A DNA stretch of 64,000 nucleotides from sequence record OR493421.1. One strand, given 5' to 3'. The notes under the pieces are model-generated. The model did not search any database and was not told where the DNA came from. It saw nothing but the letters and a program-made list of their open reading frames with translations. Below, piece after piece: positions 37,945 through 50,903 of this stretch. Each line of letters begins with the position of its first letter. Positions within the stretch are counted from its first letter, which is position 1. The position numbers and the translations under genes are program-made.

Positions 37945-40920
37945 ATGAATAGAACGCGTTCAACCCGAGGATATGATTACCTCGATCAAACCAAACTCAG
38001 GGGTAATTTAAACAATATCAGCCCCTCGTTAAAAAGCGTCGTTCGGAACCTCGTTCGGGACGAGAGAGATCATACCAGAAATACGGATGAGAAAGAACGT
38101 AAAGTCCAACCTTCCAAATTAAAAAAGATCAGCGATATCATTGCCAACAATATCAATGCGGCAACTGACTTAAGGGAAATCACACCTTATGTTTCGCGGG
38201 CGGAATTAATCTGGAAGACGCTTCTCCTCTACCCGAACGGATTACAGGAAAGGATCCTTACTCACGATACTTTGCGGTCTCAATTTAAAAATACTAAGCT
38301 GCATGAAGAGTTGCTCCGTAAGACGGAAACCTACTATACCAGCGACTATAAAATCGAGAAGTTGTTACCGGAGTTCATCAAAGACGGGTTATTCGGCACA
38401 GGGTCCTACGTGCTTTTGAACATCTCTAGACCTGCGCTGGATCACCTTATCAACGGTCAACAGTTTGGGGAAGACGGAGTGACAGGTAACGAAAGTTACA
38501 TTAACACTCAGATAAAACCAGAGATTGAGAAGCAATTTAAAAATGTGGACGGTAAGTTTCTCGCCATCAACAAAGGATTGGTGAGGGGCCCTAAGCAGCT
38601 CAATAACGTCGTTCACGGGCTAGAGGCTTTGTTTAGTCACTCCGCCCCAGATGCCTCAACTGAATTCGAATTGATCGAGAATGATGAAGGCGAAGGGTTC
38701 GGGATTACCTTGACAGACAACCCGGCGGTTCTGGCTCTTCGTTCCGTGAATCAGGTTTTAACGAAGAAGATCGTTAACGACATCGGCGGGACAGAAGATC
38801 TCGCTTCCCTTATTAAATCTCGTCTAGAGAAAAAAGGTGAGGAAAGCGAAGAAGAGACTACGGCGACCAAGGATAAGAAAAAGGAAGATCCTAAGAAGTC
38901 GAATAAAGAACCTGACGACTCTAAGGCTAAACGTAAGAACGGGACGCCTAACGCTGATACTAAAACTCAGATCTTGTCGGAAAGCCAACTGGAAGTTCTT
39001 CAGAATGAGTTTTATCCGCACCGCAGTTACCCACATCGTCAAACCATCAGTGTTCGCAGTCCAGGGGTTTACGACACCTCAGTTTATGGCATTCCCTTAC
39101 GGTACCATATTCCGAGTGAAGCCTTTATTCCTGTTCATATGGAAGGTGATAGAACTAAGCTCATTGGTGGGTTCGCCTTGCTTGACCCGTCCAACGGTGA
39201 GTTCTTAAAAAGCACAAGAGACTTTAACTTCTATCAGTCCACTAAGGGTCAGAAAGATAAGATCGACACACCTAATAAAACGGGTGGAACCAACGCACTT
39301 ATCGCTAACCTGAAGAAAGTTCAGCAAGGTGCCGATTGTGACTTCGATATGTCAGAATTCACCCTGTTATCGAAGGATCAAATAGAAAAATCCCTTATCC
39401 AGGCTATTGCTTCCGGGGTGAGTGGGAAAAATATTTCTGTTGAATTGGTTGAAGCTAACCTGAAGATCTTCCTGGCTCGTTCTTTCAAGCAACAGGGTGT
39501 TCGGGTTCTTTACATTCCGGCAGAGTACTTCACCTACGTCGCGTTTGACTACAATAGCTTTGGTATTGGTTCTTCTTTAACCAACCAGGCTAAACTCCAT
39601 ATCGGTCGTTTGGCAGCATTGGATACTGCTGACATTCTGGCTAACTTGGATCAGGCTCAAACCCGTCAGCGTTTAGTGGTTGATCTGGAAGAAGACGACG
39701 TTGATCCGGATGGGACTATTGCTACGGCCAGGGCGCAGTTCTTCAGGGTGAACCCGACGCTTCACAACGTGGTAAACTCTGGTACTGTTTCAGTGCCCGA
39801 CATTGTTGAAGCAATGAAGACCCAATCCCTGATCGTTGAGGTTAATAGTAACGGTAACCCGTGGATGGTCGGACCCAAGATAACTCTGGAACCGGTTGAA
39901 CGCGGTAACTTCAAAGCTATTGACGAAACCTCCAGACAGAACCTCCTCAACAACATCGCCTCCACCTTTAAGCTCCAACGTACTTGGTTGGACGATAAAG
40001 AAGAAGGAACCAACTTCCAGGTCGAAGCATTGGCCGAGCAGGAAATGCTCCGCAACCAAACATTGATCTGGCAGAAGGTATTGGGTGACTTTGTTGCTGA
40101 GATCGAACGTAAGGATATGTTAGTTAACCAGGTTATGTTGAATCGTTTAGTCGACACCATTAACGAGAACAAATCGTTGTGGAAACCTGATAACGGCGAA
40201 GAGATAGAGGGGACTAACGAGCACATCGTTGAAGTTATCCTGGCTGACTTTATCAACAACCTCACCGTGACCTTACCGACTCCGGCTACTCAGGAATCAG
40301 TAACCAAACTGAAAGATAAAATTGATACCGTCAATCAGTTTGTAAACTCGTGGGTTGAAATGTCAGGTACGTCGGGCCTGATTGAAATGATCATGAACAA
40401 GGTTGACGCTAACGGCGGTCTGGATATTGAGAAAGCTAAATCCATTATTCGCAGCACTTATCTGATCGAGCTCTATGATCGATTCAACCTCCCTATGCCG
40501 TTCGATCTTATCGGTAACAAGGGTAAAGAAGGTGGGATCTATTCGTTAATCCACAACATATCTCAGTATGTAGACAACAGTGGAATGTTCTTAGAACAGT
40601 TCATGAAGGTCTGGAATAAAGAGACTGATCGACTGACTAAACGTTTGGAAAAGATCATGCCTGCGGAACAGCCTCCGGCGGATGAGTTCGGCACCCCACC
40701 TGCTGATGAGGGTACCCCTGAAGAGGGAACTCAGACAGACGACGATTTCTCTATAGAGGAAGATTTGCCTGGGGAAGGGGGAACGACTGAGGAAGAAGAG
40801 ACGGGAACAGGCACTTCCGAAGAAGAAGAAGAAGAAAACCAAACCGAGGAAGAAACAAAGACAGAAGAAGACGGCGATAAGAAAGACGACTTCCAAGTTG
40901 ATGATTCCATCCCGGAATAA
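37945..40920 (+). CDS. probable portal protein (phiKZ gp129 / SPN3US gp81-like)
   Basis: 991 aa; position relative to capsid, helicase and RNAP genes matches recalled phiKZ-family synteny; GxE maturation motif (VTGNES); acidic C-terminal tail. Confidence 0.55.
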   Translation: MNRTRSTRGYDYLDQTKLRGNLNNISPSLKSVVRNLVRDERDHTRNTDEKERKVQPSKLKKISDIIANNINAATDLREITPYVSRAELIWKTLLLYPNGLQERILTHDTLRSQFKNTKLHEELLRKTETYYTSDYKIEKLLPEFIKDGLFGTGSYVLLNISRPALDHLINGQQFGEDGVTGNESYINTQIKPEIEKQFKNVDGKFLAINKGLVRGPKQLNNVVHGLEALFSHSAPDASTEFELIENDEGEGFGITLTDNPAVLALRSVNQVLTKKIVNDIGGTEDLASLIKSRLEKKGEESEEETTATKDKKKEDPKKSNKEPDDSKAKRKNGTPNADTKTQILSESQLEVLQNEFYPHRSYPHRQTISVRSPGVYDTSVYGIPLRYHIPSEAFIPVHMEGDRTKLIGGFALLDPSNGEFLKSTRDFNFYQSTKGQKDKIDTPNKTGGTNALIANLKKVQQGADCDFDMSEFTLLSKDQIEKSLIQAIASGVSGKNISVELVEANLKIFLARSFKQQGVRVLYIPAEYFTYVAFDYNSFGIGSSLTNQAKLHIGRLAALDTADILANLDQAQTRQRLVVDLEEDDVDPDGTIATARAQFFRVNPTLHNVVNSGTVSVPDIVEAMKTQSLIVEVNSNGNPWMVGPKITLEPVERGNFKAIDETSRQNLLNNIASTFKLQRTWLDDKEEGTNFQVEALAEQEMLRNQTLIWQKVLGDFVAEIERKDMLVNQVMLNRLVDTINENKSLWKPDNGEEIEGTNEHIVEVILADFINNLTVTLPTPATQESVTKLKDKIDTVNQFVNSWVEMSGTSGLIEMIMNKVDANGGLDIEKAKSIIRSTYLIELYDRFNLPMPFDLIGNKGKEGGIYSLIHNISQYVDNSGMFLEQFMKVWNKETDRLTKRLEKIMPAEQPPADEFGTPPADEGTPEEGTQTDDDFSIEEDLPGEGGTTEEEETGTGTSEEEEEENQTEEETKTEEDGDKKDDFQVDDSIPE

Positions 40921-40937
40921 AAAAATAAGTAATTAAG

Positions 40938-40969
40938 TAACTCCTCTACCCTTACGGGTAGAGGAGTTA
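40938..40969. terminator. 14-bp hairpin between convergent genes
   Basis: TAACTCCTCTACCC-TTAC-GGGTAGAGGAGTTA. Confidence 0.7.
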
Positions 40970-40975
40970 ACTTTC

Positions 40976-41371
40976 TTATTCTTCGGTTTCTTCTTCTGAT
41001 TCGTACAGCGGAGTGATGTACTGATCGAAGGTGGCCGCCAGGGCGCTCATGCCCAGAGTCACGCCGTAACCTGCTGTGAATGCACCGACATCCGCGACCG
41101 GGGAATGCGTTCCCGTCAGGCCACTGAAGCCATCCGCGAGTTTACCAGTTTTGTACCCAACTAATCCGCCGACGACTGTGCCGACAACAGTTGATGGTTT
41201 GATACCTTGAGTGACGGTGCGATGCGCGCCGCCAACTACCGCGCCCAGTACACCGGCGATTCGACCGACCCGATAGTTGACATCGGTGGATTTGTGACCG
41301 GCCAGCATTTTCAGAATTTCTTCTTCCGACAGGGGAGCTTTGTTAACCGCAGGTTTGTTTGCCATATCCAT
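40976..41371 (-). CDS. glycine-zipper membrane protein, paralog A (131 aa)
   Basis: GRIAGVLGAVVGG, GTVVGGLVG; GAGG RBS; acidic C-terminus. Confidence 0.75.
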   Translation of the reverse strand: MDMANKPAVNKAPLSEEEILKMLAGHKSTDVNYRVGRIAGVLGAVVGGAHRTVTQGIKPSTVVGTVVGGLVGYKTGKLADGFSGLTGTHSPVADVGAFTAGYGVTLGMSALAATFDQYITPLYESEEETEE

Positions 41372-41439
41372 GATAATACCTCTTACGTTTTGATGTTGAG
41401 TTGCCTAAAATTTAACTACACTTAAACGAACTGGATGAT

Positions 41440-41832
41440 TTAGTTCGCTTCGACTTTGCTCGGGGTTAATGCCCCGCCGATGGACGCCCCGATAGTGCCG
41501 CACAGGAAGCCAATGTCAGCGGTGAGCAGTTTGTCAATGAACTGATTGCTCAGATCATCAGCGATACGACTACCCACATAAGCGCCGCCTGCGGTACCAA
41601 CCACGCCACCGATCAGCGTGCCGACAGATGGTTTGCTCGCCATGCTCAGAGCGGTGCCGATAACACCACCGATCACTGCGGCTTTCACGTGGCTTTTCTG
41701 TTTGTCGGTAGCTACGTAGCCACCGAGTTTTTCACAGATGTCGTCGAACAGGGAAGTTTCTGCATCAACAGCCAGCATTGCTTTAGCTTCGTCGAGTTCA
41801 GCGCCAGTCAGTTCAGTGTTTTCTTTTTTCAT
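41440..41832 (-). CDS. glycine-zipper membrane protein, paralog B (130 aa)
   Basis: AVIGGVIG, GTLIGGVVGTAGGAYVG, GTIGASIGG; AAGG RBS. Confidence 0.75.
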   Translation of the reverse strand: MKKENTELTGAELDEAKAMLAVDAETSLFDDICEKLGGYVATDKQKSHVKAAVIGGVIGTALSMASKPSVGTLIGGVVGTAGGAYVGSRIADDLSNQFIDKLLTADIGFLCGTIGASIGGALTPSKVEAN

Positions 41833-41895
41833 GATCGTATTTCCTTACTATTGATAGTTTAATTTAAGATGCATCGGATATTTCAGATGCGTTTA

Positions 41896-42468
41896 TTACT
41901 CTGCAACAACTTCAACTTCTTCATTGCTGAAGAAACGTTTGGCGACAAAGCCCGCGCCAAATACAGCGCCGCCACCGATAACGCCACCGGCAACAATACC
42001 TGCCGCGACATCAGCGTACTGATTACCCATACCGATCTGTTTCTTGTCAGCCAGATAACCCACGCCGTAAGAAACAGCAGCGCCGACCACACCAGCGCCG
42101 GCATTAATTGCGTTCGCACCTTCTTTTAAGATGGCCGCGCCAGCACCGAGTACTGCACCGACCGCCATCGCATTTCGCAGATTCAGATATTTGTGTTCGA
42201 CATGCCCGTTAACACTGGCAGCGACTTTGGCGACATCTTCTTCAGAAATGTTTTTCTGCGGTTCGACGTAGACCAGATCGGAAATACCGAACTCTTTGCT
42301 TACGATCGCGATCAGTTCCGCTTGCTCAGTTTCATTGAGCTCGAACTGCCAGATCTCACCATTAACCAAATTACGCAGCAGCTTTTCGCGGACACTGGCT
42401 TCCACGTCGTTGCAACCAGAGATGATACGAGCAGCGATTTCATTGATCATATCTTTACGAATTTCCAT
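41896..42468 (-). CDS. glycine-zipper membrane protein, paralog C (190 aa)
   Basis: AVGAVLGAG, AGAGVVGAAVSYGVG, AGIVAGGVIGGG; extra N-terminal helical segment; GAGG RBS. Confidence 0.75.
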   Translation of the reverse strand: MEIRKDMINEIAARIISGCNDVEASVREKLLRNLVNGEIWQFELNETEQAELIAIVSKEFGISDLVYVEPQKNISEEDVAKVAASVNGHVEHKYLNLRNAMAVGAVLGAGAAILKEGANAINAGAGVVGAAVSYGVGYLADKKQIGMGNQYADVAAGIVAGGVIGGGAVFGAGFVAKRFFSNEEVEVVAE

Positions 42469-42574
42469 TTTGGACCTCTTTAGTGAATAAGAATTAAAAT
42501 ACTTGTTGTTTATACACCTGAATGATATCGACTTATAAAAATCTTCATGTTAAAAAATTAAAGCTTTCTTACTC

Positions 42575-42602
42575 CCTACCACCCCCGTTAAGGAGTGGTA
42601 GG
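42575..42602 (-). terminator. hairpin of the dispersed family
   Basis: CCTACCAC-C-CC-CGTTAA-GG-A-GTGGTAGG; the C/A mismatch becomes a G-U pair on the minus strand. Confidence 0.55.
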
Positions 42603-42610
42603 AAAGACGA

Positions 42611-43246
42611 TTACTTTAATTTTTCTATCTGCTCGATCATCTTTTCTCTATCGATTCCAGTGATGGTGATGACGTTACCGTATTTGTCAGTAAAGCTCAT
42701 CACGATCTGTTCCCGCACCTCTATTTTAGGAACAACCTGGTAATCGGGGGTCGCCGAGAATGACCCAGCGGGCACACCGTAGGTCAGTTTAACCAAATCG
42801 TCTAATTTAGCATATTCCTTTGTTTGCATCCTGTAACCTTTTGGTTCCAGGTAGGGCAAAACACCTATGAGTTGATCGTACAACGCCCTTAAATTCAAAA
42901 AGGAATCAAGCTCAACCGTAGTTCCCAACATCAGTACAAATTTTTTATCTGTTGATATCCATAAGTCGTAATAAATCTTAAACGATTTAAGGTAATGCTC
43001 GTTAGTGATGGGATGATAATCAATCGTACACTCCGACTTATTCTTGGAAATGATTTCGGCGTACTGACCCATTAGGTAAAGACTCTCCGCCATGGAATCC
43101 TTCTGGCGTTCAGAGAATACCCCGGTCATGGAAGGATGGAGGCCGTAGACAAGTGACGAGCATTCCGCTTCATTTTCTGTAACATCGATGAGGGCCGGAA
43201 TTGACAACTGCGCGTGTTGACTAATTTTAAAAATTGGACGATTCAT
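42611..43246 (-). CDS. hypothetical protein (211 aa)
   Basis: AAGGA RBS; flanked by hairpins. Confidence 0.7.
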   Translation of the reverse strand: MNRPIFKISQHAQLSIPALIDVTENEAECSSLVYGLHPSMTGVFSERQKDSMAESLYLMGQYAEIISKNKSECTIDYHPITNEHYLKSFKIYYDLWISTDKKFVLMLGTTVELDSFLNLRALYDQLIGVLPYLEPKGYRMQTKEYAKLDDLVKLTYGVPAGSFSATPDYQVVPKIEVREQIVMSFTDKYGNVITITGIDREKMIEQIEKLK

Positions 43247-50815: not shown

Positions 50816-50869
50816 CGATAATTTCCTTTATTCAAAGCTTTAAACAAATATTTGTTTACGGCACTAGTA

Positions 50870-50876
50870 CATAAAA
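50870..50876 (-). promoter_or_regulatory. TTTTATG candidate late promoter of the capsid gene
   Basis: Intergenic, 55 nt upstream of the capsid ATG; TATG core as in phiKZ late promoters. Confidence 0.45.
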
Positions 50877-50903
50877 TGTACTTAACCCCTTATGCATCAG
50901 GGA

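Follow-up and report, generated by a model that had tools for sequence, protein, structure and literature searches.

Klebsiella phage YC1 (OR493421.1), a giant, nucleus-forming and chimallin-encoding relative of phage Miami, carries three small adjacent genes for Gly/Ala-rich proteins beside its portal gene. What these proteins are, when they would be made during infection and where they would act are the questions raised by this locus. The original prediction, made from the letters of a 64,000-nucleotide stretch of the genome (hereafter the window), took them for tandem glycine-zipper membrane paralogues produced in large amounts. It proposed a channel or coat for the early-infection vesicle, a DNA-entry or exclusion pore, or a membrane-active effector, and could not assign them to a described system.

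Genomic setting and gene structure

The locus is well conserved among close relatives, positions 40900-42620 being 94-97% identical to phages KPN8, Miami, BUCTxx100, phiKp_32 and VB_ZK_P1. The neighbouring 991-aa gene (37945-40920) encodes a portal of the phiKZ gp129 type, matching phrog_3004 (E 1e-211) and aligning to phiKZ gp129. The chimallin gene was missed by a single-sequence search of YC1 and was then located with a PHROG profile at 103761-105773 (phrog_4795, E 4e-102). As YC1 encodes both proteins, we placed it with the phiKZ-related jumbo phages that have chimallin. Its portal is 42-45% identical to those of Vibrio phage pTD1, Erwinia phage RisingSun and Pseudomonas phage EL, whose genera are the nearest on this measure. 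Elsewhere in the window, the gene at 62200-63465 matches the internal head family PF12699/phrog_5750 (E 6.6e-49).

The three predicted ORFs, which we call A, B and C (131, 130 and 190 aa), lie exactly where they had been placed, and all are annotated as CDS in OR493421.1. They are encoded on the minus strand, a point absent from the original prediction, so that the order of transcription is C, B, A and the unit reads toward the end of the convergent portal gene. Gene C (41896-42468, minus strand; orthologues P0007 and L010:4975-5589) is predicted to consist of a helical N-terminal extension of ~95 aa, a three-helix Gly/Ala-rich core and an acidic tail. Gene B (41440-41832, minus strand) would be reduced to a three-helix glycine-zipper core without such a tail, and gene A (40976-41371, minus strand) combines a three-segment glycine-zipper core, including a conserved S-H-S-P loop, with the acidic tail EEETEE. 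Each gene has its own Shine-Dalgarno sequence (GAGG, AAGGA and GAGG) 6-8 nt upstream.

Both bracketing hairpins proved to be strong folds. The upstream one (42572-42605, minus strand; 15-bp stem, -25.1 kcal/mol with ViennaRNA) stands after a gene of 211 aa and is followed by a T-run (42551-42571); judging from its sequence, it probably insulates C-B-A from upstream transcription. The other (40938-40969; 14-bp stem, -27.5 kcal/mol) is a bidirectional hairpin terminator common to the convergent portal gene and gene A, and a terminator is annotated there in phage Miami. C-B-A would thus form an insulated transcription unit. A, B and C are real genes under purifying selection: measured against phage Miami, A has a dN/dS of 0.06 and B one of 0.28, and one synonymous substitution is the sole difference in C.

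Three old paralogues in a conserved order

Pairwise BLASTP among the three proteins is weak (E 5e-4, 0.014 and 4). Profile-profile comparison of their orthologue sets supported the proposed paralogy with probabilities of 97.5% for A/B (E 5.6e-12), 95% for B/C and 93% for A/C, values that composition may inflate, and the alignments are in register over 90-113 columns. The order C-B-A recurs in three independent diverged metagenomic phages with ~20-48% protein identity to YC1, within a shared succession of a vRNAP subunit gene, a gene of 790-800 aa (797 aa), a small gene of ~209 aa, C, B, A and the convergent portal gene. Since the subtypes recur at such low identity and their profiles are in register, the triplication appears to be old, with every subtype retained. 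Retention of three subtypes is the pattern that would be expected of non-redundant subunits, rather than proof that they assemble.

The copy number differs in the named relatives. RisingSun has one copy (gp87) and pTD1 has two, in the same slot. EL has one homologue, gp082, which follows the homologues of the RNA-polymerase and 797-aa genes, the EL portal gene being elsewhere. The predicted position beside the portal therefore stands for YC1, but the adjacency is partly incidental, as the EL gene keeps to the vRNAP/797-aa block. The module was also found at the C-terminus of larger proteins, EL gp127 and a 363-aa ORF of RisingSun.

A rare and undescribed family

To define the family, a profile of A, B and C was compared with 1.84 billion representative proteins. 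Only eight clusters were found, and they sort into A-like, B-like and C-like groups. With the same profile, nothing was found at E <= 1 in phiKZ, 201phi2-1, Goslar, RAY or OBP; given the absence from the first four of these, the family cannot be a universal component of the early vesicle in recognisable form. A tblastn search of 50,697 phage records returned A, B and C in seven Miami-like genomes only, word-indexed protein searches returned only near-identical copies, and a scan of IMG/VR for the three proteins returned nothing.

In agreement with the original prediction, no described family fits, and every Pfam glycine-zipper cut-off is missed. The best Pfam match is that of B to Gly-zipper_YMGG (PF13441; 23.3 bits, gathering cut-off 28.9), followed by Gly-zipper_Omp (19.2 vs 25) and Rick_17kDa_Anti (15.3 vs 24.2). 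A reaches 12.4 against a cut-off of 24.2, C has no match to the Pfam glycine-zipper families, and only one or two of 16 family members match them at E <= 0.01. Profile comparison with PDB sequences gave nothing significant (best E 0.028, an unrelated Gly-rich stretch), nor did a PHROG scan of A, B and C, and a match of the three to PF12699/phrog_5750 was sought and not found. A Foldseek search of the PDB with the C model gave nothing at E <= 0.001. For the N-terminal domain of C, neither Pfam nor PHROG offered a family, and the Atlas gave no structural match with TM > 0.5. As no significant Pfam, PHROG, PDB-sequence or PDB-fold match was obtained, we consider the family undescribed: it shares the glycine-zipper type of motif yet falls outside the curated families.

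Predicted fold and relation to the membrane

The composition is as had been described, with 25-27% Gly+Ala and, in each protein, three hydrophobic segments rich in small residues and carrying [GAS]xxx[GAS] ladders. We counted 9-13 overlapping [GAS]xxx[GAS]xxx[GAS] matches per protein, within three predicted helices, so that A, B and C all show the repeated small-xxx-small ladders by which a glycine zipper is generally recognised. AlphaFold2 models of B (pLDDT 65 overall, 72-79 in the core; helices 43-66, 70-95 and 102-122) and C (pLDDT 63; helices 97-116, 120-142 and 150-183), both of low confidence, show alike two helices in a hairpin and then a third one. The N-terminal regions are hydrophilic and very acidic. 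Acidic ends, which had been attributed to all three proteins, hold for the tails of A and C, which are very acidic, but not for B, whose tail is not basic either (1 K/R, 1 D/E). Similarly, the [LI]SEE lead-in noted in A and C is present in YC1 but is not conserved in their orthologues.

Small-residue ladders at i, i+4 within apolar helices are the classic pattern of membrane glycine zippers, and on this basis membrane association of A, B and C is plausible. The helices are weakly hydrophobic, however, which makes insertion into the bilayer uncertain. Kyte-Doolittle hydropathy over 19 residues peaks at 1.29 (A), 1.37 (B) and 1.88 (C), and it is only in the third segment of C that the classic threshold of 1.6 is passed. 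On a Hessa-type scale, the insertion free energy is positive for every 19-residue window (+2.5 to +9 kcal/mol), and the charge-free stretches of segments 1 and 2 span 12-16 residues. No signal peptide, hydrophobic leader or lipobox Cys was found in the three proteins. They might enter the bilayer as oligomers only, rest at its interface or remain in solution.

A promoter motif shared with chimallin

A conserved regulatory block (42502-42562, minus strand), made of a T-run/AACATGAAG block and a promoter-like motif, precedes the unit. The motif AAGTCGATATCATTCAGGTGTATAAACAACAAG (26-33 nt) begins at 42534, which is 66 nt ahead of the gene C start codon (ATG). The block is also found upstream of the orthologues in L009, L010, RisingSun, EL and pTD1, and upstream of YC1 chimallin. 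Near-identical copies of the motif occur in YC1 ~100 nt upstream of chimallin and at 100654, where it precedes a block including an SbcD-like nuclease, and clusters of small genes are preceded, at a distance of 46-63 nt, by weaker copies. The consensus is A-R-N-Y-C-K-ATAT-W-A-Y-Y-N3-GTG-W-ATAA, and it resembles the 'putative phage promoter' annotated in EL. RisingSun, EL and pTD1 have the motif upstream of both the glycine-zipper gene and chimallin, which makes it common to chimallin in four phage genera (those of YC1, RisingSun, EL and pTD1).

A position weight matrix was built from the five non-YC1 glycine-zipper sites, leaving out YC1 and all chimallin sites. Its top three hits in the 252.5-kb YC1 genome were 100654, the site before gene C and the chimallin site. 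In RisingSun, EL and pTD1, it picked a site 149-165 nt upstream of chimallin, scoring above all 300 shuffles. No such motif precedes the capsid and sheath genes, which have TTATG-type sequences in its place.

In jumbo phages encoding RNA polymerases, a conserved AT-rich motif upstream of presumed early operons marks the promoters of the virion polymerase (PMC7598289), and chimallin is an early-expressed protein (bioRxiv 10.64898/2026.04.21.720040). C-B-A has such an AT-rich motif in common with a known early gene. Because this motif is shared with chimallin and absent from the capsid and sheath genes, we read C-B-A as an early-class unit, probably very strongly expressed, set among late structural genes, its timing being inferred from promoter similarity and the analogy with phiKZ. 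Its promoter would belong to the class of the chimallin promoter, presumably the early class read by the virion RNA polymerase. The shared motif is a new finding that had escaped the original prediction, and it lends support to the link with early infection proposed there.

Codon usage of major structural genes

The codon usage of A, B and C had been likened to that of the capsid and inner-head genes, and the major capsid and PF12699 genes are indeed the sole ones of the window to match them. We calculated the frequency of optimal codons (Fop) with an E. coli-type optimal set. It is 0.80 for the capsid and PF12699 genes, 0.62 for A, 0.75 for B and 0.63 for C, and 0.36-0.56 for all other genes of the window; in gene A, CTG makes up 0.80 of the Leu codons. 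Among the 288 genes of the genome, B ranks 4, C 10 and A 13, the first three places being held by the capsid, the PF12699 inner-head protein and chimallin, and ranks 6-7 by the tail tube and sheath.

The bias relative to neighbouring genes is kept by the orthologues in L009, L010, L011, RisingSun (gp87, Fop 0.84) and EL. This conservation points to selection on expression or translation and not to recent acquisition; transfer from a host as the source of the bias was rejected, since the orthologues of diverged phages keep it with respect to their own neighbours. High abundance, as originally proposed, is thus a reasonable inference from a codon bias that is both extreme and conserved, and the codons would be tuned for very high translation. 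Four metatranscriptome runs gave short contigs at a depth of 1-10 over C-B-A and its neighbours alike.

Function of the C-B-A unit

Our preferred reading, to which we give a probability of about 0.5, is that the three paralogous glycine-zipper proteins of C-B-A form an assembly that is made early and in abundance and is probably associated with a membrane. A, B and C, as anciently diverged versions of one small three-helix protein, would be produced at high levels in the first minutes of infection, together with the nuclear-shell protein. The retention of three subtypes in a fixed order suggests that the three combine into one assembly, associated with a lipid membrane in the infected cell that could be the inner membrane or that of the early-infection vesicle.

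Other explanations were weighed against this one. Early inner-membrane proteins might seal the envelope against a second phage or perturb the host membrane, as exemplified by Imm and Sp of T4, early small membrane proteins of superinfection exclusion. The early-class motif, the small multi-helical proteins and a copy number that varies from 1 to 3 between related phages, as for accessory genes, would suit exclusion or host takeover. Yet a codon bias equal to that of major structural proteins would be unexpected, the conservation of position, order and three subtypes in diverged phages is more core-like, and the Pfam and PHROG scans revealed no similarity to described exclusion proteins, so we regard this explanation as unlikely. 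A soluble nature is a question that the hydropathy results keep in view: the Gly/Ala faces could pack the helices tightly into a bundle soluble in water, or into a larger assembly such as an accessory to the chimallin shell or to cytoplasmic assembly sites. The positive insertion energy predicted for every 19-residue window, the short charge-free stretches, the very acidic N-terminal regions and tails of A and C, the lack of a signal peptide or lipobox and the apparent co-regulation with chimallin all agree with it. Against it stand the i, i+4 ladders in apolar helices, typical of membrane glycine zippers, and the fact that the sole family matches, although sub-threshold, are to membrane glycine-zipper families; we hold a soluble role to be quite unlikely.

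The position of the genes among head genes, together with a codon bias like that of the capsid and PF12699 inner-head genes, would be consistent with proteins packaged near the portal, possibly once the prohead protease has cut off an N-terminal propeptide, and entering the host membrane during DNA delivery. The acidic tails of A and C and weak PHROG matches to hydrophobic parts of tape measures (E 0.06-0.09) point the same way. In addition, the [LI]-S-E-E motif of A and C fits what we take to be the prohead protease sites of the T4 and phiKZ types, and a cut at this motif would reduce both proteins to 114 aa. The motif is not conserved in the orthologues, however, which demoted the propeptide idea to a minor rival, and the promoter is of the chimallin type, unlike those of the capsid and sheath genes. 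In the EL record, virion-protein status is given to the portal and not to gp082 or gp127. The published lysate proteome of RisingSun lacks gp87, a weak argument given that it lacks the portal too (PMC6034870). Packaging in the head consequently strikes us as doubtful. Least probable by far is a lysis function, as holins and antiholins: small size and several hydrophobic helices would fit it, and one weak PHROG holin match was obtained (phrog_2359, E 0.061, the sole one). Early-type promoter motif and extreme codon bias speak against it, as do termini that are acidic and not basic and the lack of an adjacent endolysin, the annotated endolysin domain lying at ~149-156 kb, ~110 kb from C-B-A. Judged from sequence, A, B and C show none of the traits of holins, namely expression late in infection, a C-terminal tail that is basic and an endolysin gene close by.

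Within the preferred reading of an early membrane-associated assembly, a more specific proposal can be made, which we consider a long shot. In nucleus-forming phages, the genome is first held in a lipid vesicle and is then moved into the protein shell. A, B and C could be an abundant hetero-oligomeric, membrane-active assembly, made with chimallin and acting on the lipid vesicle that encloses the injected genome; it might open or dissolve the vesicle for DNA passage into the nascent nucleus, or offer an exit route to early mRNA. We know of no phage membrane protein tied to the vesicle steps, and if the proposal is true, C-B-A would supply, in the branch of EL, RisingSun, pTD1 and Miami, the first membrane component encoded by a phage for that step. 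How early mRNA leaves the vesicle and how its bilayer is shaped are listed as open questions in a preprint on Goslar (bioRxiv 10.64898/2026.04.21.720040). C-B-A is a concrete candidate here, testable in culturable phages of Klebsiella, Erwinia, Pseudomonas and Vibrio. Should the vesicle idea fail, the shared motif still defines, in this branch, a small regulon of genes that would be very strongly expressed, and the proteins still form an undescribed family of eight clusters.

Comparison with known systems

Two proteins of other phages, OBP_131 and N1M2 gp104, are found at the equivalent position, with the portal on one side and the vRNAP/800-aa block on the other. They are small, Ala-rich and hydrophobic, and share with A, B and C the acidic N-terminus and the three hydrophobic segments rich in small residues, and with A and C the acidic tail. 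Homology to them was rejected on an hhalign probability of 0.15%. A language-model feature search placed the MamC cluster of the magnetosome (PF26373) among the nearest neighbours of B, with a score of 0.77 that is a lead only, being below 0.9 in the calibration of the tool. MamC resembles these proteins in being small, Gly-rich and helical, and it is abundant, as they presumably are, but alignment-based support for a link with B is absent.

T4 Imm and Sp are likewise small phage proteins with helical hydrophobic segments, and early expression, presumed for C-B-A, would be a further likeness. Unlike them, A, B and C form a trio of paralogues with the codon bias of structural genes, and PHROG detected no sequence relationship between the two sets.

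Further parallels are the three Pfam families that gave the best, sub-threshold matches for B, the last of which (PF05433) is the 'glycine zipper 2TM' family of the SlyB/PCP type, Gly-zipper_Omp being PF13488. The phage proteins have in common with them a predicted helical hairpin, in which a short polar loop joins two short helices rich in Gly/Ala and bearing GxxxG ladders. Members of these Pfam families are typically exported lipoproteins or outer-membrane proteins that begin with a signal peptide or lipobox. The phage proteins differ in lacking a lipoprotein signal peptide and in being phage-encoded and, presumably, made in the cytoplasm, with acidic tails in A and C and a third zipper helix added to the hairpin.

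Promoter-like motifs outside the chimallin and glycine-zipper genes

A third full-strength copy of the promoter-like motif found upstream of chimallin and of gene C, the first gene of the glycine-zipper trio, lies outside the window at position 100654 of the Klebsiella phage YC1 genome (OR493421.1), on the minus strand. Downstream of it are a 41-aa ORF, phrog_3294 and phrog_14597 proteins and an SbcD-like nuclease; farther along on the same strand is a 247-aa gene (96526-97269) that ranks 5th in codon adaptation among the 288 YC1 genes.

The heptamer TTTTATG was enriched in intergenic upstream regions across OR493421.1 (12 occurrences seen versus 1.6 expected), one such region being window 50816-50903, and it precedes the major capsid gene. 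TTTTATG may mark the late, TATG-type promoter class.

Genes around the trio and the terminase annotation

Directly upstream of the C-B-A unit on the minus strand is a 211-aa gene (window 42611-43246) that had no matches in Pfam or PHROG. Compared with Miami, a close relative of YC1, this gene showed a dN/dS of 0.28 and a dS of 0.33, evolving faster than its neighbours. The equivalent position in one metagenomic relative is held by a 209-aa gene. Unlike the small gene preceding the trio in the metagenomic relative L010, to which an early-type motif belongs (TCTATATTAC...GTGCAT, L010:4140-4300), the YC1 211-aa gene lacks its own copy of this motif.

The portal protein (window 40560-40920, plus strand) ends in a low-complexity tail of ~120 residues that is extremely acidic and consists largely of Glu, Asp and Thr. 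Outside the window, 'terminase large subunit, intein-containing' is annotated on three separate ORFs (85426-88972 and 124202-127600 of OR493421.1), so that this terminase may be encoded by a split or interrupted gene.

Related positions and modules in other phages

In the OBP branch, the portal-adjoining slot that the trio fills in YC1 holds OBP_131 in phage OBP (L016:8933-9568) and gp104 in N1M2 (L017:8947-9609). Both proteins are small and acidic, carry three hydrophobic segments rich in Ala, Ser and Thr, and have no detectable sequence relationship to the glycine-zipper trio family. The three-segment glycine-zipper module itself forms the C-terminal part of larger proteins, namely EL gp127 (L014:786-2000) and a 363-aa ORF of RisingSun (MF459646.1, around 125.8-126.1 kb), and therefore behaves as a portable domain.
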